Shown here piece by piece: positions 427-25,250 of a DNA stretch of 64,000 bases; position 1 is the stretch's first letter, and each line of letters opens with the position of its first letter. Below the pieces are notes generated by a model. The model worked only from the letters and a program-made list of their open reading frames with translations, was not told where the DNA came from and searched no databases. The position numbers and the translations under genes are program-made. The stretch comes from Convolutriloba macropyga (Eukaryota). The stretch spans positions 38,936,001-39,000,000 of the forward strand of contig NC_134479.1 in assembly GCF_964194025.1 (NCBI RefSeq). Reading direction: 5' to 3'.

Positions 427-1295
427 GAGTCGTTTGCGGAATTCTTCCGGCTATGTTTTTTTTAAGATCTGTTCACACATTTTCATGATTTTTGAAGTCA
501 AATTGGAGTAGTGATTTTTGGTCACGCCGAAACAGGAAGTGGAGCGAAAAGCGAGTGGTTTTGCGGCGTGAAATTTTTTCGCTCTAAATTTAAAGTAGAG
601 TGAGAAAACGGTGTTTGAACAAAAATTCGCTTTCTCGCTAGTGGTTTTTTGTTCACATGCGGCATTTTCGCTTTGATTTTTTCTGTTTTTTCGATTTTTT
701 GGATCGGATTATTTTTCTAAAGGGTTTTTCCAATCCATTCATAGTCCTTTCTAGGTCTAGTTTTTTGTTTAGTCAATGAAAATTCTTTGAATTGTACGTC
801 AGGACTTGTCCTGCTATGTTTTTTTACTTCGTCGAATAAAAAAATGTTTCGCTTTACCTCATTTTGCCGCTTTTTGAACATTTTGCGTGAAGTGTTTTTG
901 ACTTCTCGAGGCTAGTTTCTCTCTTCTCTCATTCTGCTAAAAGTGATTTTGAACATCAGTTGCTCAGCAAAGCAATTCAAAATGAACATAGTCAGTATAA
1001 AAAATTGAAGTCAGAAGTAGAAACGGGATAAACCCATAAAGCCCAATTTTTTTGATGCCCGCTATTTGAACATCGTTCCTATAAGTCTTAGTTACCATCT
1101 CTAATGCTTATTGGTATTGATAGTAGCCCCTGTAGCCTCTCTCTAAGAAACAGAAGTATACAGAAGTATAAGACTTAAAAATGTTTTTGTACAAAAAATC
1201 TTTTTTTCCAAAATCCTCGATTCTTTCAATCCCAATCATGCTTATTGGAATCAACGGTGGCTATTTTCCGGCAATCTGCCGGGTATGTTTTTGTA
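427..1295 (+). repeat. Modular dispersed repeat, copy in the CHD intron (modules B then D)
   Basis: 427-830 is near-identical to 20724-21120. 850-1260 resembles 24865-25230 and 10190-10400. Confidence 0.85.
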
Positions 1296-1429
1296 TGAAG
1301 TAAAATCAGCATAATGAGTGTTAATGTTGAAGATTTCTTTTATAGAAGAGAATCATTCAATTGAGTGACAATGATGAAATTTATACCTACCAAAAAAGAA
1401 ATCGGCTTATTTCATGCTTTTGTATTTAG

Positions 1430-4400
1430 ATTCGAGTACAGTCACGTCAACGATGACATGTATGGACTGTCCGACAGTGACTCAGATGCTAGTGGCTCTG
1501 CTGAGAGTGGTAATGGTAAAACCGAACGAGGCGCTCCTAGGAAGCACAAGAAAAAGGGCGCTGGTAACGCGGACGATAACAGCTCCGATGGTGGTCAAGA
1601 GTTTGTTAGATCCGATCTCTACCAATGCGAGAAGGGTCTGTTAACGTACGGCTGGGGCAATTGGTTGAGAATTATTGAAGGGTGCAAGTTCAGGCGTGAT
1701 ATGACAACAAAGTTAGTCGAAGACTTGTGTCGGTGTATCTTGGCCTATGCATTGCAGTGGTACCAAGGGGATGAGAAGATCCAGCGGTTTATAAGAGAAC
1801 TGATAACTCCTGATAATGACAATATTGAATTCCTAAAATCTCATGCTGCTCAGTCAAGCGTTGCTCCACGAGGTCGGAAATCAGCGCGTGGAAATAAATC
1901 GGATCGATCAAACTCCGAAGCTAAAACGGAAGAGCAAACTCATTGGTCAAACACTGAGAACCTTGAAGCTGTTTTGTGTGATCCAACGTTTCGAAAACAT
2001 GTACGCTATCAATGCAATAAAGTACTAATTCGCGTCAGGACTTTATTTTTCATTCGTCATGAAGTTATTGATGACTTGGCTGAAAAAGTTGATTCAGGTG
2101 TAAATTACAAGGATCTACCATTGCATGTACCGCCGATTGATATAGTGAAACCCTGCGATTGGTGGGACGAAACATGCGACAAATGTTTGTTTATCGGTAT
2201 TTATAAACATGGATACGACCAGTTTACAAAGATCAGAAATGATCCCACGCTTTGCTTTTTATCGATCGTCGGTGAATCGGAAACCGAGATTCAAGATAAC
2301 ACGTTGGATGAAGATGAACTTGAGAATGACCTTGAAAATGCGGAAATGAAACCCGAAGGTCAAATGGACGGCGATGAAAATGAAGCGAAAAAGGACACAG
2401 GACAAGATGGAGAAAGTGATAATGCAACCAGTGTAAAGCAAGAAGTTGAACCGTCGGTAGAAACAGAAAGCACCACAGAAAATGGTGAAATTTCTTCTCA
2501 AGAAGCAGTTTCGAGTGAAACATCTGTGAAGCAAAATGATAACGAAGATTCGAAACCTGAAAATTCTGAAGAGAAAAGTAATGACCAAAATGATGAACAG
2601 GAGGCTACTTATTGGCCACCGACTTCAGCCATAAATAACAGACTTAGAAAGTTAATTGCCGCTCTTCAAAAATTGTCCAAGAAACAGAAACTCATGCTTG
2701 AAAAGCGCAAGAATCGACTTGAAAAACTAGCCATTATCAACGCTACGAAGCCGCCACCTGAAGTGAAAGAAAAATGGGCGAAACGCGAGGAAAATGATTT
2801 CTACAAAACCATATCGACTTTCGGTTTACAATATACACAAGATGGTAACGTTGTTTGGGACAAATTTAGAGTGCTGGCTTCTTTGAACCGTAAGTCAGAT
2901 TCTGCTCTCACGCAATATTGTGACGCTTTCAAGGCTATGTGCGAGAAAGTTTGCAGGATTAAAATTGAACCTCTTGACGAAGTTGATAGCTCAGCTCCTC
3001 AAATCGAACCGATCACCGAAGATCGAGCCCGGAAAACTCTGCACAGAATCGAATTGATGCGGAGAATTAGACTGGATGCAATTTATCATCCGGAATTTGA
3101 GGAGAGGATTAAACTGTGCCAGGCTGCAATGGATATGCCCTCATGGTGGATTCCGGGAGAACATGACCGGGACTTGATGATCGGAGTTGCGAGTCATGGA
3201 ATCCTAAGAAGCGAAGTCAACTTATTGCAAGATCCGACGCTTTGTTTCTTGAATGTCAAAGATGAGATCATGAAAAGCGTGCAACAAAAGCATGATGAAA
3301 AAGTTGCCAAGTTTAAAAGGGATAGAGACACCGAAATTACTGACTCTCAAGCAACGTTGACAACAGTATCAAACTCTACTCATGAAAATCTTGCCACTGA
3401 ACAAAATGTTGAAACTTCGTCAGTTTCAGTAGATAACGAGAAATCGGAAGTTTCGATGTCTAATTCAGACGAACCAAAGATCGACTCAGAGAAGAAAGAG
3501 AATGATGTCGGATCTACAGAAATGAATGAACCTTTGTCTGAAAAGGTCAATCTAACTGAGGAGATCAAAACTGAAATTTCACCAGAAGTGAAAAGTGAAG
3601 TTAAAACTGAAATTGAGCGCGCTCCCTCGCCAGCACCTGTGAACATAACTGATATGCTTGGAGTAGCGTACTTAGTGCAGTGGCCCAAAGATCGGGTTCT
3701 GGTTGCAAGGTTGGAGAAGATTTGTACTTGTATCGAGAACGGAGGATGGCCGAACATGAAATGGAACCAACCTCCCGCTCCGGTTTCATTTGACAAGCAA
3801 GCTGCATTGCAGGAAACGGAAGAGTTCCAGGAACGTCTGGTGGATAAAACTAACCAGCCGAAACAACAGCCCGTTGTCCAGATCATGCCAACTGATGCTA
3901 TTATTGATGGGTTGTCGGCTAACCGAGTTGCCAGTGATGGCTCTACTGTGTGCTCTTTTAACAAACCAGGACGTCGTGGAAAAGCGTCCAATGCAGGTGT
4001 ACATTTGCCGGCAAATATCCGGAAGCAAAGCAATAATGTCAGCGCGACACCGAATCCAATTGCTGATGAGAAAAGTTTGTCAAAACTTAGAGAGCTTTTT
4101 GAGAAGCAAGGTACAGCTATGGAGAATGAATCGCCTTTGCCGCTAAGCGGAGGAGGCATCGGAGGCATTATGGATTTGTCCATGAAAGCAGGTAATTAAG
4201 TCAAATCAAATTTAAAAGTATTTAAGTCAAATAAAATCGTAGTCATTTCGTACAACTTTTTATTCCGAGTACTGGTTTTAAATCTTTACAGAAACTGCTT
4301 ATCTTTCGAACGCAAAATCTTGCCGTGACTAGGAATTATATTTAAAGTCAGAGGAATAAACTCTATTTCTCTCTCTCTCTCTCTAATTTGGGATGTGATG

Positions 4401-6383
4401 GTTTTTTAAGGTTTCCTATCATATATCTGATATTGTGTTAAATGGCTTTGATTTTATATACTTGTATTATTTCTAGGAGCAGGTTCTCTAGGCATAAACG
4501 TTCCGAGTGTGAGCTCCAAGTACGCCAACAGTGAAAGGTCGACACCGGACTCGAGAGCAGAAGATGCGGACATCTCGGATCAGGGATCTGTTATTGCTGG
4601 TGGATCGGAAACCCCAGACCTAAAACGCCGAAGTGTTGGTAGCTCTAAACGCAAAAGGAAGCATGCTTCGATCATTATTGATCCCTCAAAACTTGATGTT
4701 GATAATATTAACGGAACAGAACACGTTGCAGTTGTTGATAGAATATCAGGTGTTAAAATTGAAGGAAGTGATGCTCCGATATTGAACAACGTTGTTGATT
4801 TCTTGTACAAGAACAGCACGTTTGACATTGCTCCTGAGTGGGAGGTTATCGTGAAGGCTCAGAAGAGATTCCCAGCCGATTTAATGAAGCGAGTTGCTGG
4901 TTTGAACCCTGGGGGTAGTCCAGAATCAAAGAAATTGAAGCAAAGTGGAAAGCAGCTGTACTCGCCTGCGAGATCAGTCAGCCAATCAGCTTCGAGCTCG
5001 GTGGCAAATAATCAGAACTCAGGTTCTACCTCATCAACTGCACAATCGGCCAATCTGTCATCCGCCGACCTTCTGTCGCAAGCTGCTTTACTTAGTAGTC
5101 TTTCATCCATGGGTGGGAGCTCAATGAATCCTTTCGGATCCTTGCCGAATCTACCTCCAATCACTCCAGACCTGGCATCGCTTGGGCTCTTCAATCCCAT
5201 GTTATCGATGTTTCCTGCAGGATCTCAGAGTACAACAGACCACAAATCAGCATCGTCAATTGCTGCAGCAGCAGCCCAAAGTGCTGCTTTGAATTATCAA
5301 TTGGCAAGTCTAGCGGCGGTATCGTTAAACCCGCTGCTTGCTCAGTCACTGAACCCGTTTTCATCGATTCCCGGTTTAAACCCGTTCGGAGGAGCAGCTT
5401 CAGGTCAAGACGCTTCAGCAGCGCAGTTGGCTGGCCTGTCGGCATTGCTAAGTGGAAGCTTGCCTCCAGGCATGAGTCCCGATTCTCTTCTTGGATCCCT
5501 GTCTCAACCTGTCAGTACTGCCAGTGCTACACCAGCACCTGTCGAGAATACATCATCAAAGCTTTCCGCAAGCAGTAGTGGATCTGGAAATAAATCAAAC
5601 AGTCAAATGTCTCCAAAAGCTGTAAATACTGCTTCAGACCTCCATTCCCCAAAGTCGCCTGTTGCAAGCGGTTCTGCATCGCCAGGGAACTCTAAAGTTG
5701 CGACCCCGCCATCGACACCTGCTAAATCTGGTACCCTCATAGGAACTGGAACTAGCGGAAGTTCTAGTTCAAATTCAAAGTCACAGCGTTCCTCTCCACC
5801 AGCAGCAATTTCTAATTCTGCGACACCCGCAACAGCAGCATCGCCAGTCAATCCTGTAGCATCAAATTTGCTTCCTAACATTCCGCAATTATCTCCAAAT
5901 GACCTCTTGACCGCTGCATCACTTGGATCGCTTCCTTTTATGATGCCACCATCGGTTCCGTTTCTTCCTTCAAGTCAGTCTTCGACCAGCTCAAGTTCAT
6001 CTTTAAACAGCGCGGCTGCTATTCCAGGCTTCGACCTATCGGCTGCAGGGTTGGAAGCTGCTCAATTGGCAGCTTTAGCCAGTTTATGTGCCGGTGGAGG
6101 TATTCCAGGAGCAACTGCGACGGGTGTGGATTTGCAACCCACAAACGCCCTGTTTGGAGGATCGGCACCGTTGTATCCCAACTCGGACTTGTCGAGGTTA
6201 TCAGGCGTCCAGAGCGATTCCTTCATGAATGAACAAAACGCTTTGTTGGCAAGAATGCAAAAAGAACTGGCTGATCATTTGGCAGGCACTAGCAGTGAAA
6301 CGAGCAACGTTTCTAGTTCTCAAATGAAGGACACGTCAATGAGTAATGCTGATACAAAATCGAAAAATCCGAAATCAAATTGA
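1430..6383 (+). CDS. CHD7: CHD7/8/9 (kismet-like) chromodomain-helicase, 3' part only; exons 1430-4191 and 4477-6383 (upstream exons are outside the window)
   Basis: CHD6-9 C-terminal motifs EKGLLTYGWGNW, WWDETCDKCLFIGIYKHGY..IRNDPTLCF, SANT-like KWAKREENDFYKTISTFG and WPKDRVLVARLEKIC. BRK domain INGTEHVAVVDRISGVKIEGSDAP..FDIAPEW. Acceptor tttag|A at 1429/1430. GT-AG intron 4192-4476 joins the two long ORFs in frame (G|GA). The paralogue (CHD6/7/8/9) cannot be resolved. Confidence 0.9.
4368..4384 (+). repeat. (CT)n microsatellite in the CHD intron
   Basis: Seen directly in the sequence. Confidence 0.8.
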
Positions 6384-7659
6384 TTTCACGATTGATTTGC
6401 AATTATAAGTTGGCATTTTTTTCGTAAACATCTAACCGATATCGCCGAGTGCTTGGTGAATATTGATGTCTCTCATCATAATGTATTCGTTGTGTTGATC
6501 TATCCTGGCTCTGGTCTCAAATCTATCAAATATTGTTGTACAAATGTGGAACTGTTATCCTTGGAAACTTGAAAAAACTTTCTTTCCACTAACTAAAAAT
6601 TGGAATTACATAAAATAGTATTTTCTTTTTAAAAAATAATAAACTAGACAACTTTGATATTGGGATGGCATATATGATAGTTTCAGTTTATAAGCTCTAA
6701 CAGTTAAAGGTTCTTTCAGATACAATTGGTCGTTTTCAAAGGAAACAGTTCCGTCTATTTTATTATTGTCAGTTTTTCATTTCACCTCATTTAAACGTAG
6801 CTTTGGTAAGTTGCTCACTAAGCTGCCAAGTTTCTACCAGGCAACCCAAAGATTCAGAAAAACTTGATTTTATCATAACTGAAAGTGCAGTATTCCATCA
6901 ATTTAAAAAATACATAATGAGTTTGTTTTGAAAGTGATATTTGTTAAGGAGGAAATTTGGCAGCTTATTGAACGGTACCTTTAGAAGATTTACTATTTGT
7001 GCTTTTTTTATTTGTATCAATTATAATAGATTTAGTTGTTCTGTACTGATTCTTCCATATTGGTGTGCTATATTAACCTAGTGTATAGTATCATCATCCA
7101 TGTTTTTAACCACCCCTATTCAATAAACAAAAATCATTCAATCCTACCTTTCTGATAATAAATATTCAGCAAATTGCTCAAACTAATTGATATATAGCTA
7201 ATTTATCCTTTTTGACATAATTAGTATTGCAGCCAAATTCTTAACATTCAATGTCTTTAATAGATTTCAAATGACACCCCGATTGATGCTTATTTGTATC
7301 TTTTTTCTTAAATTCAGTGTGCATAATTTGATAATTTTCCTTTCTTTTATCCCCTTTGTCGTCTTAATAATTGTATTACTATTTATGATTTGTTGTTTCT
7401 TCACCTTAGTGCAATTTGTATCATTAGTGCAATGCAGCCACCTTTCAAATTATCAGTGTAATTAATAGATTTTCTGCTATTTACAAAGTTTTCAGTTCAA
7501 TCAGTAGGGAAAGCGTCGGCTCATATATATTGAAGTTGTGGGTCGTTCCCATTATAGCCTCCCCTCTCCCAAATCACTAACATAATGGGGGGGCGTATTT
7601 TCCGTGAAGGACAAATGGGAAAGACCCACATTTATTTACGCAAATATTTTTTATGAAAT

Positions 7660-10430
7660 TCTTATTAATAGCCGCCGTCAGCCTCTCAACGGCTTTTATT
7701 TAGGCGCTCTCCATTTTACAATCCAAAGGACTTCGATTGTATTGGCGTGAAGATCTGTTCACGCTTTTTTCGGCTTTGTTACGTCTGTGAGAAGTCAAAT
7801 TAGAATTGTGCTTTTAGCCACGCTGAAGTACTAAAGGGAGCGAAATTTAGAGTAGGTTTAAGGCGTGACTTTCTTCAAACTACCTTTAAAGTGGAGCCAA
7901 AAATTGGTGTGAATAAATTTTCGGTTTTCGCGAGGGAGTTTTTTTCACGTGCAACAATTTTTTCTTTTCTGTTTTCAGAGTTGATTTTCCGTTTTCAGTG
8001 CTTTTAGTATAATACACATGTGTTATAATTGCGCCTAGTTAAAATTGCTAGAATGCATCAAGGGGTAGCTGAAATCTTTTACGACCTCAACACTTTTTTG
8101 TCAAACAACATTAAAAGAATATTTGATTTTGCCCATTTTCAAAAATTTTTTTGCGTTCTTATCTATTAGTATCATCAATGACAGGTCTCATTGGTTGATG
8201 ATGAGGCGCAAAAGAAACTAATTAATGGTCCGAGCTGATAGCCTATTAGTTTTCATGACTTTGACAATACTTTTTCTCAACAATTTTGTTAATTTATGAG
8301 TTTTTGTTGTACTTTTTTAATTTTGTTGTCCTATCATTTATTCTCATTAATAAACTGTCTCAAGGCTGCTAATGGGGTTATTTTTCTCAGTTTAATGGTC
8401 TCTGTTCAAATCTGATGGCTTCTATGACTCTGATATCAGTTGTTTTCAAGGAATATTATAGAATTTTTGAGTTTTGCTGCTACCTTTATTATCTTATATC
8501 CTTGTCTCAATATTGACAGTTTTCCTTGTTTTCTAAAAAGCTTCTCTTTTTGTTAAAATACTTTTCAATTCATAGCTATTTTTTTTTATTTATACACTTC
8601 CCCTTTTTTTGAAAAAAAACTTTTTTTGGATTTTTAATTTTTGCAAGTTTTATTTTGACCGTGCCTTTAAAAATAGATAGGATGTTTTTAGTCTTGCTTG
8701 TTTTGTTCTTTTCGTAAAATTGCTTAATCTCAATGGTGTCAAACTATTTGTTCTCATTGGAAATCTAACAAGGCTTTTTTGGCAGGTCAAAGCTAAGTCA
8801 ATTCTTTGGATTGTAATTCAGGACTTTTCCAGCTATGTTTGCTTAATTCACTTTACTTTTCGATTACGCTTTTCGTTTTACATAAGTGACGATTTTCACG
8901 CTTGACTTCTGACTTACCTCCCTCTGTTTAAACTGAATGGATTTTAAGTTTTTTCGCGCATTGAATTACACAGTGTAGAAAATACGGTCAAAGTGAAAAG
9001 AGAAAAATCAATAGATCAAAAATAGGTTAAGCATATAAAGCACGGTCGTGAAGTCATAGTGCATTAGGTTATCAAAGTTGAATAAAGCGATTGCTAGCTG
9101 GCATTAGTATTTTTAATTGCTCTTGAGAGAAGTTCATAGCGATTATTGTAAACGTGTCTTTTCTATGCAAAATTTTCGCTTGACAATTTTGACTTTTCGC
9201 GTGACTTTTACGCCCTTAACTTTTTGCGTTTCGCGTGATCTAAAATTCTCTCTCAATCACAATTTGAAGCAGCTGAACTCAATTGGCGGCAATTTAATTC
9301 TAAATGTCAAATAAAAAGTGCGGCGAAACTGGTGCCATTTTTACTTCATATCTTAATAGTGCTGTATGTTAACCTCTGTGGTTATTTAAAGCGCACCATT
9401 GAACTTCTTAGTCTCATTTAGGCTCCCCTCCCTCCTCCTCCCCGCCCCCGACTGAAGCAGGCTGTAATTGATTAGAGCTCCCGCTAGTCGTTCGAGAGCA
9501 ATTCTTCCGACGTTTAGTCGGTTATGTTTCTTAATAGTCGTTCGGAAGCTGATTTAAGTGTAATTTTTGAATCTAACCGAATATGCAGAATTTGCTCACC
9601 AAATAAAAAAATTTTGACACTTCTGTGACTTCTGTTCTTGAACAAATTGGTTTTGGAATATTGATAAAAAAAAACTATTTTGATTCCTTTTACTTCAAAT
9701 TATTTTTCCAAAAATACATTGAGATTTATCTTCTATTGCTCGCTAGCAAAGGAAACTCAGGTTGATTTCCCCTTCTGTATTCAATTATGAGTAATTTGCT
9801 ATTGTAGGATTAATTTGGCTGGATCTACTCGTACTTCCGTGCAGTACAGATCGCTTGAAAATTTGAAGTTCTCAGTCACATTAACTTGTTCGGTCGATGT
9901 ATTGAACAATTAAGTTCTGATTTTCTGTCAGCGTTTATTTTGTTAGTTCGATTTGTGAACTTGTCTGAGCCAGAAGTTAAAGAAGTCTTGTCGATTTTTC
10001 AGTTGCTGTAAAATAGAAGCTTCAGTTTCGAAGCGGGCTATTATTGCGTTCTTTATAGTTTTTGAGAAGTCGTTGCATTGAATTAGTGGTCGGTTTCCCG
10101 GTCTGTGAAGACTATTGACTTCTCTGGGCTAGTTTGATTTTTCTCTCAATTCGCTGAGAGTACTTTCAGCGCAGTCTTTCTGCGGAAATGAAATCAAAGT
10201 GGAAAACGAAATCAGAACGACTGATGGGTAAACAACCCATAAAACCCAGATGTAGATACACGATTCGCTTTACCATTTTTTCTTTACCCAGTCTATGCTA
10301 ATTCGTATTTGTAAAAAGCCTTTTATCCTCCCATTGTAGGAAAACATTCAATCTCATTTTTTGTTTGATTCAATTGCTCTGAAGGTCATTGGAATCAATT
10401 GCAGCTATCGTCCAGCAATGTGTGATTTTT
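7660..10430 (+). repeat. Diverged modular repeat copies between CHD and Chk1
   Basis: 7666-7960 resembles 19716-20050 and 466-660. 9115-9190 resembles 23398-23472. 9480-9530 resembles 24060-24110. 10190-10430 resembles 1010-1290. Confidence 0.65.
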
Positions 10431-10856
10431 GATTTTTTCAACATTTGATGGACTTTATTGATTGATATTTCGAAAAACTTTGTTTCAAGCCTCTGAGTTT
10501 TCATTTGAGGAAGCGTGTAACGTCATTTTTGTCCATCGAAGATTTTGTTCTTGTGATTATTTCTGATCTTGTGACTTTTGGCACCGTCAAATTAGTTTTT
10601 TTTTATTGTCTGAATTGAAGCTATTACAAGGAAACTCTTAGAAGAACTACTTTAAGGATTTGGAAAGTCAAGGCTGTCAGCTTTTTGTTCAACCTGAGAT
10701 TTATAACAGAAATCTGCATTAAATTTAAGTATTTTCTGATTATTGGAATTTTATGAGAAATTAGTCATCAATCTTTTGCCGAACTGTCTTAAAGAATTTA
10801 TAAGCTCGGATATGTTTTGATGAAGTTTAACGGATTCTCTGTCTTTGCAGATATTT

Positions 10857-13070: not shown

Positions 13071-13096
13071 ATTAAACTTTTTTTCATTGCATTAAA
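13071..13096 (+). terminator. Candidate Chk1 polyadenylation signals
   Basis: ATTAAA at 13071 and 13091, followed by T/GT-rich sequence, ~200 nt after the stop codon. Confidence 0.4.
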
Positions 13097-13401: not shown

Positions 13402-16400
13402 ATGCCTTCAAATAGAATCATTTCATCAATTACCAAATTCGGAAGTAGGTCGACCCCATTTCTGAAGCCTCATGCAGCGATAGCTAACACAAATTTGCTC
13501 CAAAGAATGTCCAAGTCAACTTTGGAAAGCAAGTTTGAAGAGATGTCCTCAAAAGTCAACAGTTTGAAGAAAGATCCCGGTAACGAAGTCAAACTAAAGA
13601 TGTACGCTCTTTTTAAACAGGCAACACAGGAAAGTTTGATGCTCATTTTGTTTCACTTTAGCCTGACTCCTGTTGTCTTCTAATATTCTGTAAGTATTAC
13701 TGCATTAGATATTTTTTTTTCTGAAATTTTTGTCCGCTTCACGCAACAATTACATAACATGAGTCGTATTGCTAATAGTTTATTGTAAGTTCGTTGTTTT
13801 GCTATCAATGTAAACACTTGAAAAAAGTTCAGAGGAGGGGAGGGGAAAATTCGACACCAGCAATCCTTCAATGCAGCCCTGCTTTTAATTTTTAAAAATG
13901 GCTTCTCTAGCTTTTGTTTTTGAAATGAGCATCAAATGTCTAGGGTGCAAACACAACCTCAAAACCCGGAGCTCTCAATTTTGTAGCGAAAGCAAAATGG
14001 GACGCATGGACAAACTTGAAAGACATGAGCAAAGATGACGCCATGCAGGAATACGTCAGCGTCGTCGAGGGATTAATAACCAATGAATCGTCGTCTTCCG
14101 AGGAATCGAAAGAAACCGGAAAGTCAACGGCAGAATCGAAATTTGAGTTTTTGCTGTATGAAGTGAAAGATGGTTACTGCAAAATAACGTTTAACAGGCC
14201 CGAAAAGTACAACGCGATAAACTGGAAATGTTACGAAGAAATCGGAAATGCTTTGAATGAGGCAGCTCAAGATGAAAACGTTGTAGTTGCAGCCATTACA
14301 GGTACGAATCAAGTTTACTCAGTCCGTTTGCCATTTTAAATTGCTTGAGTAGTTTAGCTTGTTTAAACGAGTACTCTTGCGTGATACAGTCGAGAAAAGT
14401 ATTTGAGCTGATATTTGTGTTTATAGTTCATTTGATCAAAGATTATAAGCCAATTTGTGTAGGCAGTTTTTTTGGAATTGTGCAGGCAACATTCCAGTAA
14501 TTGATCAATTTCATTTTATTCAACTCTTGGGCGCCAATCGCCAGTACGAGTTGTGGAGGATTCTTTACTGCTTGCGATGCAGTTTTGCACTACACTTGGA
14601 GGCAAGACATTTCAACACTTTTTCAACTGCTATGGGGCTGACACGGTTGTTTTTTTTGTTCCAAAGTGGTCACTATGGCCCAATATACACTTGAGAAAAC
14701 ATCAGCAATTTTCCCCGAGTTTGTAATGTTCAAAAGTGGCTCATGTTTTGCGCATTTTCTTGGTTTTGTTTGGTTTCTGGTAGGTAACTGCATTTTCAAG
14801 TTGCTGGGGGACGTAGCCGACGTTCTTTTTGAAAAGAAATTAAGTAAATTGTAATCGAATTCGTACGGTATTGATCCTTTTGAACGAAGAAATTTCAATT
14901 CGTTGATGGTTCTACTGTTCAGGAGTTTTGTCTGAATTTAGAAGTGTAGCAGTCTTTCCAAATTCATTTTTTGACAGTGACAAGGCACAGTGCAATATAT
15001 GTTTTTTACTCTGCATCAAAGCTGCGATGTTACTTCTTACATTGAAAAGTTTCTACCACAATCACCCCTTTAGCCATCGTTCAATGTCTTTGGTTCTTTC
15101 GCAATAGTGATTGTGTCCTCCACCAAGGTTGTGTGGAACGAAGGACAAATTTGGGAGCTGCAAAAGGATTAGACAAAGGAACTGGGTTGTCAGGGTGTAG
15201 AACACACCCTTACATCAGCTGAGTCAGCAATTAAGACTACTCGCCTTATATAAGTTGCACAAAATTTGGGGTAAATTGAGAGAACTTGCTTCGAGTCGGC
15301 AATTGAGACTACTCGGCCTATATAGGTAGCTCAAAAATGGGGGATAAGTTTTCTTGAGATTCTTTACATAAAAAGTCTAATTTTCTCTTACGAAATCTTT
15401 GGGGCATCAAACAGGAATGATATAGAGTTAAGGAGTAAGATATCCGTTTATGATGTTTCAGCGTCATATTATGATTTTAAATTGTAAATTTTGTTGCGCA
15501 TATTGTATTAATCTGGTTTCAGGCAACGGACCCTTCTACTCAGCGGGCAACGATTTAAGTGGATTCCGACAATTGGCGGAAGAACATGGTGGTGACATTT
15601 ACAAAGCAGCCGCAGCCGCTGGAGTTCGATTGGAGACATTTGTGGACAGTTTTATCCAGTTTCCGAAGCCATTAGTTGCTTTGGTCAATGGACCGGCCGT
15701 GGGAATTCCAGTCACAACATTAGGATAGTTGACGCGCATTTCTGCCTTAAGAAATTTAGAGAATGATTTTCCTCATGAAATATGGAAGTAGAAGAGGATT
15801 TCCCTCTTTTTGCAAGTAGAAGCGGTATTTGTTCAAGGAGGCTCTGATATGATTGGCTGAAATACCATCAGTAATTTGCTGAACTAACTTTTCTTTCATT
15901 TTCATTTCACCTGAATTTTCTCTTACAAACTAATGTACCTTTAATCAGTAAAGACGGTAAGTCGAAAGGCAAGAAACAAAAAAAAACAGTCTAGGAGATA
16001 AAAATGGAGATTGAAAAAAATTTTTTTAGATTGAAAATAATTTCAAAATTATTGATGGTGTTTCAGCAACGAAGTATTCTAACTGGTATTTTGTTTTAAG
16101 GACAAGCTGAAAAACGTTTTCTTTTGCTGGCCACTCCATCTGTGTGGATATATGGGGATTGAGGCTCTGTGCTCGATGTCCCTATTTTAACGCCGACGTT
16201 AATGCTTAATTTTTTTTTACAATTGAAGCTCTAAACTAGTGTTAACGTTGGGTTCTGGTTCGGGTTAACGCTGAGTTTTGTATTAATACCCAATATAAGA
16301 GATAAGTAGAATTTGAGGAAAGGGTTTTCGAGGGAACACTTTATTGAATTTTCTTGATAATGTTTTGAACATTTGTCCTTCAATGGTAAATTAGTAACTT

Positions 16401-16851
16401 TTAATTTAAAATGCGCGTATCTTCAGGACTTTTCGACATTGTGCTTGCGTCATCAAACGCAACATTCCACACTCCTTTTCCTTCTCTGGGCCAGTCACCT
16501 GAAGGTTGTTCATCATACACATTCCCCAAGCTTATGGGCCACGCAAAAGCTGTCGAGTTGCTCATTTACGAAAAGAAAATCACAGCAGTTGAAGCTATGG
16601 AGCGAAATATAGTCAACGAAGTTATAGAGCAAAGCGATTTTCAGCGTATTTCACAAGAGAGACTTGAATTTTACGCATCATTGCCTCGGAAAAGTTTGCT
16701 TTACTCGAAAGGTTTGATTAGAGATAAACAACGTGAGAAATTGATGGCTGTCAACAAAGAAGAATGCGAGCGTTTAGTTGAAAGATGGACGTCTGAAGAA
16801 TGTATAAATGCCATTATGAAATTTTTGACCAGGAAACAGTCGAAGATATAA
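13402..16851 (+). CDS. ECI2: Enoyl-CoA delta isomerase 2 (ACBP + crotonase domains); exons 13402-13629, 13944-14301, 15523-15723, 16427-16851 (403 aa)
   Basis: ACBP motif [27 protein letters not shown]. Crotonase motifs [38 protein letters not shown] and [15 protein letters not shown]-terminal SKI (PTS1-like). Exon lengths sum to 1212 nt, in frame. Confidence 0.93.
13630..13943 (+). other. Non-canonical GA-AG intron (ECI2 intron 1)
   Basis: CAG|GAAAGT...GTCTAG|GGT gives KQATQ|GANTTSKPG, colinear with ECI2 KQATEGPCNMPKPG. The nearby GT at 13634 gives a frameshift or stop. Confidence 0.75.
15221..15350 (+). repeat. Two diverged 72-bp tandem units in ECI2 intron 2
   Basis: GAGTCAGCAATTAAGACTACTCG at 15221 and GAGTCGGCAATTGAGACTACTCG at 15293. 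Confidence 0.7.
15724..16426 (+). other. Non-canonical GA-AG intron (ECI2 intron 3)
   Basis: TTAG|GATAGT...CTTCAG|GACTT gives VTTLG|LFDIV, matching ECI2 VTLLGLFD. An in-frame TAG at 15726 rules out a downstream GT donor. Confidence 0.8.
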
Positions 16852-17461
16852 GTTAACGATGTCATATCAACGTGTCTGAACTGTTTGTTAAATTGTTTTA
16901 ATATATGAGAATATTGTAAATTTCAATGTTCGTAGACTTCTACAATCTCGGCTGACAAAGCGGTCAGTTGTTTTTTGTTTAAAGATTATGAAAACTTCGA
17001 ATCATCGGTACGTGGCCAATGTCCGAAAAATCGATTTTGTCGGGCATTTTTGCGACCCATGTTTTAAGATAAGAGTTGGAAGCGTTTGGAAACGAGTTAA
17101 ACTAGGCTTATTTAGTTTCAAAATTGGATGAGTAGTCAAATTTCACAAAGCGCTACCGTGAAAACCTGGGACAATCATTCGTCACTAATTTCCGCGCCAT
17201 AAGTCACTAAACTCCACACAATGAGTAACTCTTTTCCAATAACTAAGACAGTGTCAATTAGAAATGCAATAAATCCGAATTGGCGATGAATAAGTTAAAT
17301 GGATAAGCGTTTTTCCTTTATCAGATCTGTGCATACAAATGGGAGTCGACATGGAATAGAGTTTTGCATGTTAAGTTGAAGAGACAACTCTGAATTCTCA
17401 CAGCTACTGTTTGTTATGGTTCGTATTTTCGTGTCTTTTCAGATGTGATTTATTTTGGGAT

Positions 17462-20400
17462 ATGTTGGTTTGCAAAGTTGACTTTGGTCGAGATCCAGTT
17501 TTCTTGGCCGGAGAACAGGTCAAGGTGAAGTTGACTATTGAGAATGCCAGAGAAAGCAGTGGTAATTGCGATGTCAGCCAGACAGATGGACAGTCTAACG
17601 ATGTCCAAGAGGACACACTGGCTATTGCCACTGGTCAACTGGCCTGCAGGTAAGAAAAATATCAGAATATATAGCCAAATTGGAACTATTTTGTTTCCTC
17701 CCAGTTTCTTTGCTCCCTCTTAAAAACTGTGTTGTTATATAGCACGTTACTGTATAAAAAATACAGTACATGCGCCTGAGGGCGCAAACTTTATATGCCC
17801 ACGAAGGTGGTGGGGACTGAAACAGAATAGATCCGCCAAATTATCGTCAAGGCTCATAACAATGTTGCTTTGACATTACAAACATTTCTCCAACGATATC
17901 CTACTCGAAAAGCTGTGATGTTGACATATAAGGTTTTTGCATTCGTTTTTACTTAAGAATTGTTGATAGCCGCGGTTCATAGACACGCGCGGAAGAGCTC
18001 TGTGCGCTATGTGTTGAATGATAATTAGCTGAGAGTTGCGTCTTGATCTTTTCAGTTGAATTTCATTACCTTTCTAACCATATTTTCACTGTTAACATAT
18101 TGAGGTGGACACAGTCTGGCGTCAAGAATTTATATATGTAGGCACCAGTCTGGCACCAACAGTACATCATTACAGATTGCATTAGAATCCCTGAAATTAG
18201 CTTGTAGATATTTTTCAATATTCAGTATTCTTAAGTTTTAATAGTTGTACTTATCTCTAAGCGTACTTGAATAACAATAAGGCGTTGGTTGTATACCACA
18301 ATACCATCTTGATAATGTGTTTAGAAATTTATCGGTGTAGCACGATACACAATGCGTTTTTGATGATAGGCGAGTTGCTGATTTTCACAGGTGTGCGGTT
18401 AATGGCAACAAAGTGAACAAAGAGGCAGTAGAAGCAAAAATGGCTCAATTCTTCACAAACTCAGACTCAACATCCCTCTCAAATAAAGCAAAGTTCCAAT
18501 TGGGTGCTGCCAAGTCCAAGACTTCATTCAGCATTGCACAGGTGTCAGTCTTTTCTGTCTTCTGATCTCGCGAAGAAAGCAATAATTGTGTCGAATAGTT
18601 AGAAGAATCTTTCTGAGTTGCATTAAGTTACAAAAACTCATGAAGCTCTATACCTTGATTTTATTTAGACGCAAATTTATTTAGCCATTTTCAATGAACT
18701 ACCAATGTGAGGTTTTGTAAGCTTAGTCACGCATCCTTTAAAGCGGCCTAACAATAGTGATAAAACCATGAATTCTGCAAAAAGTGAACTCCAATGTTAT
18801 TTTAGGACGAGAAGGGCTACAATGTGTTCTGCACAAAACCAGAAATCATCTGCTGCGATTTGAGCTTAGGTCTGCTCTTCTAAAAATTGTAATAAAAAGC
18901 AGCCATTGTTGACATTGTAAGATCTGATCAATTTTGAATTTTTATAGGTCCTCAAGAATCAGTGTCCTTCTCATTCGCTGTTCAACTTCCCCTGTCTTCT
19001 GAAATGATTCCGACGTCATTCAACGGACATACTGTCAGATTTACGTATAAACTGCTGTTCGGTTTTCAGAAGGTGGGACAGCCTATGCAGTTGATCAAGT
19101 GTCCGATTCGAGTGTTGACACTGTGTAATAGTTTGCACGGGGAGAACCTGTCAGCCATATTGGGTGAGCAGTAACAATTAAGATCTTTTGTGTTGTTATA
19201 GCTGCCGAGCCGTTTCGCCATTTGCTGCACTGTAGGAGAGCATCGAAGTTCCATTTTGTCTTTGGCATAGTCACATTTGTGTTCGCGTGAACATAGACAG
19301 CATCCGTTCAATTAAATATAAGGTGGTGGCTGATTTTTTTGCCCAACAAGGAAGTATTTATATGGCTAGCTGGCATACTTAAGCTTATTCTTGTTTTCCT
19401 TCGTTTTTTTTCAAATTTTCTCGATATCTTCGGCAAACGCGAGATCATCTGTTAACAAATTTCCTATGCGGCAGATAATGACTATTATTTTTAATGCATC
19501 GATTTTATGCCACCGTTTGACCAACTGGAAAACACGCCCATTTTAACAATCCTTGTAATAATGTGTTGAATTGCTGTTTTTCAGCTTCGCCAAAAAGTCC
19601 CTCAGAAAAGAAAGACGTTGACAATCCTTTTGTTGAAGAGTCGGAGGTGTATCAGAAGTCAACTGAGGAACTGAACCAAAACGTCATAATGCAGGTCAGT
19701 ACCCACATTTTTTTAAATAGCCGCACAGCGATTGCTGGGGGCTATCATTGGCCTTCTCTTGGTTTTTTACAATCCAAAGAATTTGAATCGTATTGGGGCG
19801 CTGTCTTTTTTACGACTCGAAGAGGAGTATTGGAGAAGTCCTTTTTTTAATCAATCTTATTGGAGTGATTTTTGAAGCGGGAAATGAAACGCGTGAAAAA
19901 TTTTGGAGTGATTTTGGTGCGGAACAAAAGTGAAAAGCGGAGCTAAAAGAGAGTGTTTTTTGTTCATACCGCTGTTTTTGAGAGAGCGAGAAATTGATGT
20001 GTGAAAAAATTTTCTCTAAGCGAGCGAAATTTTTTTGTTCACGTGACTGTTTTTTTGTTTTAATGCTTTAAGTGGCATTTGGATAGAAGCTTTTTACCTA
20101 ATGAGTTTTCAAAATACCAATTGACTAAAGTGTTCTTGGTATTTATCATTTTTTTCTGAGGAAAATGGACAGGAAATTTTAAAACCATTTTTTAATAGCC
20201 GCACAGCGATAGCTGGGCTATTATTGGCCTTCTCTTGGTTTTTTTTTATTTCGTCGTCATGATTTTTGTTACGACCATATGACGTCACAGCCACTTTTTG
20301 TTCATTCGTTCATTCAATTTCAACTGAATTGCATGCGTGACTTCATTTTTCGCTCTTAGTGGAGCGAGTTTTTTTGTTCATTCGCGTGATTAAATTTTTG

Positions 20401-22827
20401 GTCACATTTGACTTACCTCACTCTCATAAATGACTTCCTCACTTTGAAATTGACTTTTATTTACTCTAATTCAAAGAGAAGATCAAATGGGTGTGTGTCA
20501 CTCTAAATGAAGGTTATTTGAGTCAGCTGACCTTATTCGGCTTTATGTTTCCTTGTACTATTAAAAAAACAAGTTAAAAAACTCAAGTTTTTCTCTTTTT
20601 TGTTGAATTTGTTTTTGAATGCCGTTTCTTCTTCCTTACTTTTTAATGGTTTTTGTGGAGGTTCAGGGATCATAATAGTTGTTCCAATTGTTTAGTCATA
20701 AATTTGGGCTATTTTTTCCTTCAAGTCGTTTCCGGAGTTCTTCCGGCTATGTTTTTTTTAAGATCTGTTCACACATTTTCATGATTTTTGAAGTCAAATT
20801 GCAGTAGTGATTTTGGTCACACCGAAACAGGAAATGGAGCGAAAAAGCGAGTGGTTTTGCCGCGTGAATTTTTTTCGCTCTAATTTTAAGGTAGAGTGAG
20901 GAAACGGTTTTTGAACAAAAATTCGCTTTCTCGCAAGTGGTTCACATGCGCCAATTTCACTTTGGTTTTTACTGTTTTTTTCGATTTTTTTGATCGGATT
21001 TTTTCCTAAATGGTTTTTCCGATTCACTCATAGTCCGTTCTAGGTCTAGTTTTTTTAGTCAATGAAGGTTCTTTGAATTGTACGTCAAGACTTGTCCTGC
21101 TATGTTTTTTTTATTTCGTCAAGATTTTTGTTAGGACATATGACGTCACAGCCACTTCTTGTGCATTCGTTCATGCAATTTCAACTGAATTGCGTGCGTG
21201 ACGTCATTTTAAGCGCGAGTTTTTTTTGTTCTTTCGCGTGATTAAATTTTTGGTCACACTTGACTTACCTCACTCTCAAAAATGACTTCCTCACTTTGAA
21301 ATTGAATTTTATTTACTTTAATTCAAAGAGAAGTCAAATGGCTGTGCCACTCTAAATGAAGGTTATTTGAGAGCAGCTAATAGAGGCAGCGAAAACTTAT
21401 ACAGATTTTTAATCAAAATATAACTAATCAGCCTTCAATGAAAAGACGAATTTTTTGGTCTGTCTTTGTTACTGTTTTTTTTTGAGACAGCAGATCTACG
21501 AAGCTATTGCGGCTATTTTCTGGCAATCTGCAGGCTATGCTTGTTCTTTTTGTGATTAACAACGCGTCCTATCTTTGTGAATGTAAATAAACCAAGGCCT
21601 TAAATCCCTATTTTGTTTTTCTGGCTTCTACTCAATTATAGGATCTTCACTTTTATCGACTCCACAATTTTGGTGGGTGGAGCATCTGATTCATGCTTGA
21701 TTTGCGTCTTATATAATAGGATCCATGGTACAAAAGGATAGGACATGAGAGGTCGAATTATTTTCGCGGGTCAAATGATTTTCGTGATTCGAACGATTTT
21801 TGTGGGAAGTCACTGAGTTTTTTTTTGGGATAATCGAAGTGTTTTGTAGGCTGAAATTGCGATGCAGAGTTTGAGTCACAGGGGTGTCAATGGAAGTATT
21901 AGTGGTGGTGGGAATGGTCACGTCACATACAGTGTTCGGAATGGACAAACAGAGATTGCCAAGTTCTCTCTAGCCAAGTCATGCTTCCGCATTGGAGAAG
22001 AGATTAATGGTTAGATTTTTTGGCTTCCTAATTTTGATCGGATTTCTTCAGAAACTTGTGTAAATTTAGATGTTTATTACGGCAGAATGTACGTATGGAG
22101 GTGTTAATAGATGTCATGCTATTTTTGGGGGGGATTTGTCGGCTTTGCGAAAAAGATGCTTCTGCCTCTAGTTGCAACTTTCATTGCTATAATTGTTACC
22201 TAATTTATTTCGACAGATTTTTATATTTTTGTTACTTGCGTAAGTACTGTTACGGTTCATCTTTGAGAAACGAATTGAATTAATTACACTATTCTCTTTG
22301 CTGTCCATTACTGTTATTATTCATAAATAATATTGTTAATCAAATTAAATATTGTTGCAGGTTTCTTTGAATTCAACCCTTTCCCGCGGTACTGTCTACA
22401 ATACACTGTGAGCTTGCAATGTGAAGAAAAGCTGTCCGAACAGTTCCGACTCGATTCCTTGTCAACGGCGCAACCAGAGTCGTTCGGATCCAAATGCGAA
22501 TACGTTGCAGATCTCTCACAATGTGAAGTTTCTTTGCCGATTCCTCATTCCGTTACTCCATCTTTTTCCACAGAATTGGTGTCCTTTTCATGGAGCTTAC
22601 AATTCACGTTTATAATATCAACTGAAAGTCATCCTGACATCGCGACGAAGTTCACGAACACTTCGTTTGATGAAGAAAACGACGATCAAATTATAAATTA
22701 CGGTTCGCCTTCCAATTACGAGACGTTTTCGTGGACGTTGCCTATAACGCTGTTACCCAACAATCCGTTCAGGCTTCAAAGTTGCTCAACAGCTTTGAAG
22801 CGGCACCATATCTTAAATATGAGTTGA
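17462..22827 (+). CDS. RGP1: RGP1 (RAB6A-GEF complex partner, Ric1-Rgp1); exons 17462-17649, 18391-18541, 18806-18869, 18948-19163, 19585-19694, 21850-22009, 22361-22827 (451 aa)
   Basis: Motifs PVFLAGEQVKVKLTIEN, TKPEIICCDLSLGPQES, PTSFNGHTVRFTYKL..Q..PIRVL, KSCFRIGEEING, CLQYTVSLQCEE, TPSFSTELVSFSWSLQF and ETFSWTLPI. Six GT-AG introns with compatible phases; total 1356 nt. Confidence 0.88.
19710..21545 (+). repeat. Modular repeat cluster in RGP1 intron 5 (modules A-B, A-C, B-C-E)
   Basis: AATAGCCGCACAGCGAT at 19716 and 20193. Module C at 20248-20528 and 21114-21378. Confidence 0.85.
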
Positions 22828-23149
22828 ATTGTAATATTGTAAATAATGTCAATTTTATGGGGATTTTGATTGTGTATTGTTTATTTATTGTATTCAAAAG
22901 CAAATTGAGATAATTTAATTGGTTTTTGCGGAACATTAACAGATGAAGCAAGTCTTGTGCAATTAAGTTTTCCAGGAATTGATTATCAATTTTTGGAAGT
23001 ATCACTAGAAGTTTAGTGTCGTAATCCATCAGTTAAGCCCAGTTTTGGTTTTTCACTAGTTTGTGATTTTGTCTACGCGTTGAATAAGCTTCGAATTGTT
23101 TGCTAAAAATCACGTAATGGCCATTTTCAGACGTGATTTGGCTGTGTTG

Positions 23150-23274
23150 ATGGATACAACGATGGAATCTATAACTGTGCTTCCACCTGTAATGAAACCT
23201 ATAGGGGTTTCGGAGAGCGATTTGGAAGAAGGTGTCAAACAGGAGACGAGAACTCTACGGGTTCCCTCCAACAG
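23150..23274 (+). CDS. PNO1: Probable first coding exon of PNO1/Dim2 (KH-domain 40S biogenesis factor); the rest of the gene is not in the window
   Basis: MDTTMESITVLPPVMKPIGVSESDLEEGVKQETRTLRVPSNR resembles PNO1 ..GKEETRKIPVPANR(YTPLKENW). Ends at a phase-2 donor AG|GTTAAT; acceptor TTTTCAG at 23124-23130. The match is short and recalled from memory. Confidence 0.65.
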
Positions 23275-23608
23275 GTTAATATAACTGGACAGAAAAGAAG
23301 TGTCCTGAAAGGATAGGATTTGCCTTAAAATTTCTGATCATAAATAGGATCGTGAAATTGTACCTTTTAATGTTGAACACTTTGTAGTACTGTGATTAAT
23401 TGCTCTCGAACAAAGTTCGTAGCAATTATTGTAAACGTGTTGGTCTTTTTTATGCAAAATTTTTTGCTTGACCGTTTTTGCGTTTTTCTAGAACATTCTT
23501 AAGTGTCTTTTTCACGCTTTCGTTCATTTTTGAGTGATTTCTTTTGTTCTCACTCCGAAGTAAAGCTTGTTGCTAAAATAAAAACGATTGCAGCATTGCA
23601 ACAAGAAG

Positions 23609-23690
23609 GGACCGATAGCCTAGTGGGCAGTGCTTCTGGTGAGGGATCGGGAGGTGCATGGTTCGAATCCCGGTGTGGTGAACTCTTTTT
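23609..23690 (+). mobile_element. tRNA-derived SINE head or pseudo-tRNA (Pol III A and B boxes)
   Basis: A box TAGCCTAGTGG 23616-23626, B box GGTTCGAATCC 23660-23670, TTTTT at 23686-23690. Acceptor and T stems pair poorly. Confidence 0.6.
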
Positions 23691-24289
23691 GTGACCATAA
23701 AGAAAAATTCATCTAGACTAGAGCACCTGAATTAAATTTACTTTTCTTCCTCGCAAACGGGATGAAGAGCTGTTAGGGATTTAAGTTCTCTTAGGATCTG
23801 AAGTTCTCTTAAGAGTGATTTAATTAATTCTCTTAGAAATTTACGCTTTACCAGTCTCTATGAATGTGATTCACCAAAACTGTTTTGAAGAGACAATTTT
23901 ATGGTGTGAAGGGAGGTTCTTAATCTTAATCTTAAAAGTTTGACCCTCAGTCGAACCTCCACCTGGGGATTTGGACAGACCTCTCGTCCAGACCTCCCAA
24001 CCCCCGCCCCTACCCCCATTAATACTAGCATGGCTAAACCCCAGCTGGGTACTAGCAACCGATCGCCAGTCGTTTGAGAGCAATTCGCCTGTTGTTAGTC
24101 GGTTATGTTTAATGGTTGTGATTACAACGCTGGGTATTGGGGTTTTAACCTCTTCGTTGTCAAAACTTTTTGTATCTAAAATTTTTCTCAATGATACACC
24201 CCTTTGAATTAAAGTTTTTAACGTGACCGCGATAACTTTTTTCCATTTCAGATTTGTTTCTATCTCTATGCTACTGCAATCAAATCCTA

Positions 24290-25250
24290 TTTGCAGCTAT
24301 TCCGGCAGTCTGCGGGCTATTTTTTTCCAATAACCGCACAGCGATGGCTGGGGCTATTATTGGTCTTCTCTTGGTTTTTATTTCGTCATCAGGTTTTTTG
24401 TTACGACCATATTACGTCACATCCACTTGGAATCTGCTTTTTGTTCATTCATTAATGCAATTTCAACTGAAGTGCGTGCTTGACGTTTTTGTTCACTTAG
24501 TGGAGCGAATTTTTTTGTTTATTTGCGTGGTTAGGTTTTTGGTCACACGTGACTTTACCTCACTCTCAAAAATGACTTCCTCATCTTGAAATTGACTTTT
24601 ATTTAATTTAATTGAAGGGGATAAGGTCAAATGGGTGTGTGTCACTCTAAATGCAGGTTATTTGAGAGCAGCTAATAGACCCAGAAATAACTTATACAGA
24701 TTCTTAATCAAATTGTAACATCTCATCCTCTAATGAAAAGAGGAAGTTTTTTGATATTTGTTTTAATGTTTTTTAAGACGTTCTTTAGATCTACGAAGCT
24801 ATTTAGGCTATTTTTAGCAATCTGCCAGCTGTGTTTTTTCTACTTTGGCGGATAAAAATGTGTTGCGCTTTACCGTAAGTCACAACTTGTTCATTATTTT
24901 GCATGAAATCGTTTTGACTCTAGGCTGGTTTTGTTCTTTGCTTCTTCTGATCAAAGTGCTTCCGATTAAAGTGCAAAGCAATATAAATTGAACGGAGTCA
25001 TAAAAACCAAATCAGGAGTAGAAACGCGATGCAGCCCAGTTTTAGATGTCTTCTACTTGATTTTTTCTAATGCTTAATGGTATTAGTGCTCACCCCATTT
25101 AGCCCCTCATAGTGTGTCAAACTAGAATATCCAATCAAAATAGCGCGCGCATAATAATTTTTAATACGAAAACTAATTTCAATTTTGTCTGTTCTTCCAA
25201 TCCCAATTGGTGGTGTGGGAATCAATTACGGCTATTTTCCGCTTATGTTT
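24290..25250 (+). repeat. Modular repeat cluster after the PNO1 exon (modules A-C-E-D)
   Basis: 24328-24840 aligns with 20193-20528 and 21114-21545. 24865-25230 aligns with 850-1260. Confidence 0.8.

Follow-up and report, generated by a model that had tools for sequence, protein, structure and literature searches.

HINE/DINE-1 elements are non-coding repeats with short subterminal inverted repeats of 11-18 nt, the left one palindromic or with an inverted partner nearby; their targets are T-rich sites, where two or more T's, varying in number, border each side and nothing is duplicated, their interiors differ between copies that have the same ends, and they occur in thousands of copies, many of them intronic (PMC4067079). 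HLE2 elements, as delimited by HELIANO, carry inverted repeats at their termini, with a stem-loop behind the right one, and insert between T and T; DUF6570 is the marker of the class (PMC11417382). The published anatomy of HINEs and HLE2 (PMC4067079, PMC11417382) matches, except for the repeat length in two families, that of the elements described here in a 64,000-nt stretch of the Convolutriloba macropyga genome (NC_134479.1), hereafter the window. The differences from HINE/DINE-1 are that two of the families here, ACE and A1-D, have repeats of 9-10 bp, below the published range; that the stem-loop abuts a conserved terminal CTATG and so lies 5 nt from the end, while it lies further in among mite HINEs; that the head forms a separate hairpin module with a long T-run behind it; and that several families nest systematically in one another.

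Nesting as such has a precedent in maize, where nested Helitrons with multiple termini have been described (PMC3288121): as far as the part of that report drawn on here goes, an element that had received a nested insertion then transposed from a single 5′-end, reading past several 3′-ends, which left composites with stacked termini. The maize elements differ, according to the same part, in being HLE1 with TC...CTAG ends and an A|T target, and neither bracket-grammar statistics nor strict co-orientation is among the features reported there.

A preliminary description of the window had noted a linker motif at the ends of modules whose order differs between loci, always in gene orientation, and had considered recombination at the linker, Helitron-like capture or an RNA-level intronic element. 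Our analysis identified this linker as the 3′-end of HLE2-type (Helentron/Helitron2, HINE/DINE-1-like) elements that are non-autonomous. The modules most probably belong to at least five non-autonomous, HINE/DINE-1-like families of HLE2-type rolling-circle elements, which, judging by their anatomy, would depend on a Helentron/Helitron2-type RepHel encoded elsewhere in the genome. In HELIANO, a non-autonomous member is recognised by sharing its ends with an autonomous copy (PMC11417382); the elements here are classed by their anatomy. They add a neat further case to a known class, and the mechanism is not new.

Element ends and families

The 35-nt linker motif matched the window at full length once with up to three mismatches allowed (1259-1293), and its 3′ half matched seven times on the plus strand and never on the minus strand, versus 0.85 matches expected. 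All of the motif positions listed earlier were real, each representing an element 3′-end, intact or decayed (423-455, 783-818, 1257-1287, 8802-8837, 9490-9526, about 10395-10422, 20719-20751, 21069-21104, 21509-21539, 24064-24107, about 24294-24320, about 24805-24833 and 25229-25247). The linker opens with the right subterminal inverted repeat, continues with a stem-loop of 6 bp and then CTATG (or GTATG/TTATG), and closes with TT; folding of 1257-1292, a check proposed in the preliminary description, gave a stem-loop of −6.9 kcal/mol (z −3.9). A perfect hairpin directly before [CG]T[AG]TGT was counted 129 times on the element strand and three times on the opposite one, and four stem sequences are related through paired changes, e.g. 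CTGGCA/TGCCAG versus CCGGCA/TGCCGG.

At least five families were named, i.e. ACE, A1-D, F-B, H-mini and J. Every family starts with TT and a hairpin ‘head’, after which come a T-run and a non-coding body, and the first 9-17 bases of the head are an inverted copy of the right repeat (9 bp in ACE, 10 in A1-D, 17 in F-B, 11 in H-mini and 14 in J). Since the 5′ terminal repeat of each family is thus its inverted 3′ subterminal repeat, the earlier statement that terminal inverted repeats are absent was wrong; they are subterminal and short, and every family has them. At repeat position 10, head A carries A and head A1 carries C, with the complementary T and G in their tails. ACE copies begin with TT-AATAGCCGC in 29/29 cases, the two T's adjoining the head being invariant, and end with GCGGCTATT, the stem-loop and CTATG, again in 29/29; the first base after CTATG is T in all 29 and the second in 28. 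T-runs lie in every element after the head, within the body and at the end. No conserved long open frame was found within the module arrays, in line with the lack of coding capacity noted before. A CUGAUGA-like string is present in the H body, and Rfam gave no ribozyme match in 1-26 kb.

Self-BLAST of the window bore out that modules recur in different order: 417-833 matched 20714-21120 (89%), 20188-20522 matched both 24321-24666 and 21105-21371, and 21108-21547 matched 24375-24841. The modules are not freely shuffled cassettes, being parts of at least five colinear elements; the outcome that the preliminary description had named as refuting its reading, namely that all modules derive from a single colinear known transposon, holds by half, in that A-C, C-E and A-C-E are all pieces of one 505-bp element. 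When two of the modules were searched in the 1.18-Gb genome, each yielded more than 3,300 first-look candidates, of which the best 40 copies of each were 94-97% identical to the window copy.

Insertion into T-runs without target duplication

At paralogous empty sites (n = 10), insertion had added about 2-4 T on balance and duplicated nothing else of the target, in agreement with the earlier remark that no target duplications were seen, and the break fell clearly inside a host T-run in eight of the ten. Integration falls within a T-run on the element's own strand, adding only a few T's, and the target is polar, a T-run and never an A-run. Among copies, the junction T-run varied in length from 1 to 10. 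A few ACE copies are flanked by short non-T direct repeats (mean 2.97 versus 2.08 in shuffled flanks, sd 0.34), an excess that is weak and irregular. Such elements would be mobilised by rolling-circle nicking in the flanking T's, with termination at the 3′ stem-loop.

Strand polarity and orientation relative to genes

All window copies share one orientation: comparison with 58 oriented loci gave 516 plus and 0 minus HSPs, and among 60 genomic loci the inter-locus HSPs were 11,234 plus and 2 minus. No head or tail motif was found on the minus strand of the oriented loci, and none of about 75 nested heads was antisense. These counts agree with the earlier judgement that this is not random-orientation insertion. 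Along the chromosomes the copies are evenly split (37 on the plus and 43 on the minus strand for the best 40 copies of each of two modules).

The gene-sense orientation was seen directly only for the window genes and one WD40 exon, the latter being the single Pfam match among ten long open frames in locus flanks and lying in sense orientation. In the unique non-coding DNA of window 1-25.7 kb, T-runs of at least 6 numbered 36 and A-runs of at least 6 numbered 10; in the unique flanks, which were long enough for this count at 58 loci, T exceeded A in 45 and G exceeded C in 39. The gene-sense orientation could thus arise from the supply of T-runs on the sense strand of transcription units, because T-runs would be 3-4 times commoner than A-runs in sense-strand non-coding DNA. 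A polar target is by itself enough to fix the orientation of transposons locally, perhaps relative to genes too.

Selection, rather than target supply, may set the orientation relative to genes, in that antisense intronic copies would be purged for exposing poly(A) and donor-like signals, a possibility that we hold to be real but rather doubtful. The repeats do carry more such signals when read antisense than sense (AATAAA, 200 versus 58; ATTAAA, 242 versus 78; GTAAGT, 50 versus 17), yet acceptor-like TTTTAG/TTTCAG is commoner in the sense reading (213 versus 55), and purging does not explain the complete co-orientation inside nests, intergenic ones included. It touches the gene-level bias only, and can coexist with polar T-run targeting.

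More speculatively, the T-run behind a resident head or tail hairpin may be recognised as a landing pad through its likeness to the element's own 3′-end, with homing into kin as a safe haven and the T-strand polarity stemming from a single-stranded target, laid bare during transcription or replication; we consider this improbable. In a small sample, 5 of 14 nested ACE insertions directly followed a hairpin T-run, where a rough T-run count in one composite would predict roughly 1 in 5. The bacterial IS200/IS605 and IS91 are HUH single-strand transposons with subterminal hairpins, which insert strand-specifically beside a short polar target without duplication. They are prokaryotic and have other transposase architectures, so that the likeness is one of analogy only; were landing-pad homing into a single-stranded target true, it would be a eukaryotic counterpart of IS200/IS605 strand-specific targeting.

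Nested insertion explains the module order

All of the window features given here lie on the plus strand. Array 1 opens outside the window, 524 bases ahead of its first position, where heads A1, F and H lie (L001:563-700). Its innermost doll is an H-mini body (1-416), closed at 423-455 by the H-mini 3′-end, i.e. the right repeat (inverted H head), the stem-loop CCGGAA/TTCCGG with one stem base mutated, and CTATG, with a T-run next (456-463). An F-B body and 3′-end follow (464-818; right repeat 783-796, an inverted head F; stem-loop CAGGAC/GTCCTG; CTATG 814-818; T-run 819-825), and the outermost doll is an A1-D body and 3′-end (826-1287), whose tail (1257-1287) ends in GTATG, followed by unique DNA and then a CHD-type exon. 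Decayed remains comprise an old A1-like head, F-like head and B body (7659-7982, ∼70% identity to 494-683), a decayed F-B 3′-end (8800-8837, 86% to the consensus tail) and a decayed D-type body and tail (10115-10422).

Array 3 begins 14 bases past an exon-intron junction of an Rgp1-like gene with stacked heads at 19708-19841, i.e. A (19716-19762), F (19768-19805) and H (19812-19841), each followed by a T-run. The H-mini body (19849-20712) is interrupted by a 3′-truncated ACE copy (20188-20528, head A 20194-20238). The closing tails (20719-21539) come in the reverse order of the heads: the H-mini tail (20719-20751), the F-B body and tail (20760-21104), and the ACE body and tail (21112-21539; CTATG 21535-21539, stem mutated). 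In bracket notation, the stretch 19708-21539 is thus written A(F(H(A(..)H)F)A. Further downstream lie a decayed D-type 3′-end and T-run (24252-24326), a complete, older ACE copy (24327-24835, 78-83% to others; head 24329-24374, tail end CTGTG 24829-24833) and a D-type body whose tail has lost its stem-loop (24842-25247). The J family is represented by copy 1 (9113-9528: TT plus a palindromic head, 14-bp right repeat 9490-9503, stem-loop, TTATG 9522-9526 and T's) and copy 2 (23396-24109, TTATG 24103-24107), which share their ends and differ in their interiors. A tRNA-like remnant lies inside copy 2 at about 23605-23690.

The module order is a nested-insertion bracket grammar, with no free shuffling. 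Of 112 testable tails, 105 matched the innermost open head and 7 conflicted, while shuffled controls gave a mean of 65.7 matches and a maximum of 84. Outer head A1 paired with tail D in 8/8 loci, with a B duplicate in between in two more, and outer head A paired with tail C in 4/4 by script and in 6/6 after hand reading, the latter including two truncated or variant copies read by hand. Heads in unique DNA outside nests were rare (F, 4/39; H, 1/22), in a sample half of which was picked with a query containing such a nest. Given a polar T-run target and T-runs within every element, resident copies are hit again, always in the same direction, and the outcome is a Russian-doll nest, in which heads pile up on the left and the tails that match them on the right. 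Whole nests may further be re-mobilised, with an outer or inner head as the start and a downstream tail as the end, which would explain the same nest architecture at many loci, or the same T-run may have been hit repeatedly; trees of the B and D bodies were star-like and did not separate nested from simple copies.

Homologous recombination or gene conversion acting at the common linker, as had been suggested, is very unlikely to have done most of the shuffling of cassettes. The ..CTATG plus T's common to all tails, the GGCTATT common to A-type heads and their tails, the seven tails that break the bracket rule and the tail-body-tail arrangements at L006 and window 24252-25247 would suit it. Recombination would uncouple heads from tails, yet the 105 fitting tails and the exceptionless A1-D and A-C pairing keep them coupled, and the empty sites had received clean insertions of whole elements.

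Class assignment and candidate partner

Minus-strand SINE-like retroposons are scarcely tenable; on that view each T-run would represent a poly(A) tail, and target-primed reverse transcription would place later copies in the tails of earlier ones. SINE insertion into A-tails does give head-to-tail arrays, and the variable junction T-run (1 to 10) and the copies in thousands would also fit. The poly(A) reading was nevertheless rejected on the ten empty sites without duplication and the invariant two T's beside the head (29/29); besides, the nests are bracketed rather than merely tandem, and the head-tail inverted repeats and terminal stem-loop of every family are not needed for retroposition. 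Neither is there a Pol III promoter head: Rfam (E ≤ 5) and ARAGORN found no tRNA, 5S, 7SL or ribozyme in 1-26 kb. The lack of an Rfam or tRNA match, together with copies situated between genes, likewise speaks against the RNA-level intronic element suggested before. Canonical Helitrons (HLE1) or cut-and-paste MITEs can be dismissed with similar assurance, since the 3′ hairpin without target duplication (for HLE1) and the short, non-coding make-up with inverted repeats (for MITEs) are outweighed by ends of TT-AATAGCC and CTATG-TT instead of TC and CTRR and T-run targets (T|T) instead of A|T in the first case, and in the second by strict polarity (0 antisense among about 75 nested heads) and no duplication where MITEs would give fixed-length ones and either orientation.

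As for Helitron-like capture, the Helitron neighbourhood was rightly guessed, but gene-style capture was not, no captured host sequence being seen. An HLE2-type Rep (DUF6570 plus Helitron_like_N) is encoded in the genome: at no fewer than 15 loci DUF6570 preceded Helitron_like_N by about 0.9 kb, and both were within one 728-aa frame at L070. The DUF6570-Rep loci include C417:108833-110287, C615:12272-13726, C16:33949406-33950707, C6:50315150-50316447, C4:44900912-44902198 and C1:22481140-22482434. DUF6570 being the HLE2 marker (PMC11417382), this Rep is a possible partner of the elements; no heads or tails were found in the 1.5-kb flanks of the Rep loci (L061-L072).

The head/tail grammar lets annotators resolve seemingly shuffled cassettes into dated, nested insertions, and avoids misreading such arrays as novel RNA elements or recombination hot spots; the material also offers many natural cases from which to study how HLE2 elements choose their targets. 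Co-oriented repeat made up half of the bases in sixty 3.4-kb neighbourhoods of the elements, and thus these families shape a visible part of the 1.18-Gb genome.

Repeat families and their anatomy

The repeated modules in the window are Helitron-like elements of the HLE2 kind that carry inverted repeats, and their arrays have resulted from nested insertion; the kind of element is known, and in these families the nesting grammar is unusually clean and the orientation lock complete. The recurrent linker motif at the module ends, reported in the preliminary description, is real, its 3′ half occurring seven times on the + strand versus none on the − strand (0.85 expected), and the repeated modules (A to E) were borne out by self-BLAST of the window. 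All motif positions then listed proved to be intact or decayed ends of one kind.

Comparison of 60 oriented genomic copies, each taken with flanks of 1.5 kb, showed the common young unit to be a 505-bp element, ACE, equal to the former modules A + C + E. In 29 of 29 copies its 5′ start (the head) was TT-AATAGCCGC, and its 3′ end (the tail) ran from the inverted copy, GCGGCTATT, through two T's and a 6-bp stem-loop to CTATG; the next base was T in 29/29 copies and was followed by a second T in 28/29. The window holds a complete, older ACE copy (24327-24835), a 3′-truncated one formerly read as “A-C” (20188-20528), and a body with tail formerly read as “C-E” (21112-21539). Four further families are built on the ACE plan, with head/tail inverted repeats of 10 bp in A1-D (tail at 1257-1287), 17 bp in F-B (tail at 783-818), 11 bp in H-mini (tail at 423-455) and 14 bp in J (9113-9528 and 23396-24109), so that inverted repeats, initially reported as lacking, exist in all five families. 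At repeat position 10 the heads A and A1 differ, and the matching tails show the complementary difference. A perfect hairpin directly 5′ of [CG]T[AG]TGT was counted 129 times on the element strand versus 3 on the other, and the tail hairpin stems comprise four variants interrelated by paired changes. Folding of the best-preserved window tail yielded −6.9 kcal/mol (z −3.9), while the stem is gone in the decayed window tails.

A motif T(≥4)-GTTCA-C/T also recurs across families, in the bodies of the B, H and C modules; the 60 loci contain 169 occurrences, all of them on the element strand (window examples at 645, 19956, 20030, 20295, 20369, 24438 and 24486). At ~23605-23690 the second J copy contains a remnant resembling a tRNA, with motifs similar to the A and B boxes and then a T-run; it was not called by ARAGORN or Rfam, and a similar 3′ piece is present in the flank of locus L040.

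Nesting grammar

Module B has variable neighbours both upstream and downstream. An outermost head A1 was followed by D after B in 8/8 loci, plus two with a duplicated B, and an outermost head A by C after B in 4/4 by script (6/6 including two hand-read copies); thus, the B partners are not free. In a bracket test, in which every locus was transcribed into a series of opening heads, “X(”, and closing tails, “)X”, the innermost open head was matched by 105 tails and contradicted by 7, versus a mean of 65.7 and a maximum of 84 matches when tail labels were shuffled within loci. Another 42 tails and 38 heads were unpaired, and those inspected were mostly cut at the edges of the 3.4-kb loci. The window arrays at −524 to 1287 and 19708-21539 read A1(F(H(..)H)F)A1 and A(F(H(A(..)H)F)A, respectively. 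By this structure the linker is a closing bracket, and module order is a record of successive insertions into the T-runs of resident copies; this favours nested insertion as the cause over the recombination at the linker or the capture proposed earlier.

The same nest architecture recurs at at least six loci with unrelated flanks, which suggests that whole nests were re-mobilised, a process also proposed for multi-terminus Helitrons of maize (PMC3288121). Phylogenies built from the B and D bodies gave no confirmation of such re-mobilisation. Tail-body-tail arrangements, with a 3′ end replacing the expected head, were seen at L006:452-560 and at 24252-25247 of the window, and may have arisen by recombination at the GGCTATT that heads and tails contain, or be concatemer relics.

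Target site

Ten ACE copies inside other repeats, each with an uninterrupted host paralogue, were compared with their empty sites. The break lay within a host T-run in 8/10 comparisons, for example at the junction of F and B (L043 and L052), at that of B and C (L056) and in internal T-runs (L050, L058, L037), and at those eight sites the filled one carries about 2-4 T's more than the empty one. No target duplication other than these extra T's was found at the ten sites. At L036 the insertion site has T's on the left side only, therefore the TT at each end is part of the element. Non-T flanking repeats exhibited a weak, irregular excess (mean 2.97 versus 2.08, sd 0.34).

Comparison with known elements

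The anatomy matches that of published HINEs/DINE-1 and the HLE2 group. In these, the inverted repeats are short and the left one is either palindromic or has its partner close by; a stem-loop lies downstream of the right repeat, and insertion is between T's of a T-rich target, where the number of T's varies and no duplication is made (PMC4067079; PMC11417382; summary PMC13085455). The Helitron-like origin considered earlier is partly right, the kind being HLE2 and not the canonical Helitron. The anatomy matches neither canonical Helitrons nor SINEs or MITEs. The literature library that was searched yielded no description of comparable elements from acoels.

Strand lock and gene orientation

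The initial claim that all copies share one orientation was upheld, as matches of the window to the oriented loci were 516 plus and 0 minus. Comparison of the oriented loci with one another gave 11,234 plus and 2 minus BLAST segments, co-oriented repeat made up half of the bases (100.6/201.7 kb), and no head or tail motif was found on the minus strand of the loci scanned. Local polarity as absolute as this is consistent with a polar target. Genome-wide searches with two modules yielded >3,300 first-look candidates each; the best 40 copies of each had 94-97% identity to the window copy, and on the chromosome strands these best copies were 37 + versus 43 −.

Within the window (G000:C12:38936001-39000000 of the 1.18-Gb assembly), the genes of 1-25 kb are on the + strand, namely the 3′ exons of a CHD6-9-like gene (1365-6380), a protein kinase gene (11498-12874), an ACBP/enoyl-CoA hydratase gene (13944-16848) and a Rgp1-like gene (exons 18962-19171 and 22333-22824). 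About seven to nine separate blocks are all sense to these genes or in intergenic spacers, and at one additional locus a WD40 exon is likewise in sense orientation; the support for gene-relative orientation is thinner than that for local polarity. The sense strand of the unique non-coding window DNA has 36 T-runs ≥6 versus 10 A-runs, and the unique locus flanks in element orientation have T>A in 45/58 and G>C in 39/58. Given the T-run excess and the T>A flanks, target supply may suffice for the gene-sense bias, and selection against antisense copies may add to it; antisense reading of the elements exposes three times more poly(A) signals.

At 25800-64000, ~38 kb of tandem units of 590-650 bp each were observed, with 44% T on the + strand and an AT skew of about −0.35, and a 123-aa open frame without Pfam match is repeated on the − strand of many units. 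Although the + strand of this block offers 235 T-runs ≥6, it contains no insertion of the elements described above.

Candidate transposase partners

HLE2-type transposases are encoded in the genome. DUF6570 lies ~0.9 kb upstream of Helitron_like_N at at least 15 loci, and both are in a single 728-aa frame at L070. Heads and tails were absent from the 1.5-kb flanks of the Rep-gene loci L061-L072. Nine open frames of ~1,320-2,515 aa, mostly ~2,470-2,515 aa, gave weak Helitron_like_N matches (G000 C10:43.25-43.64 Mb, C4:51.23-51.24 Mb, C2:35.75 Mb and C807); none has a DUF6570 match, so they may belong to a different RepHel lineage. Five of the nine lie within 400 kb on C10.
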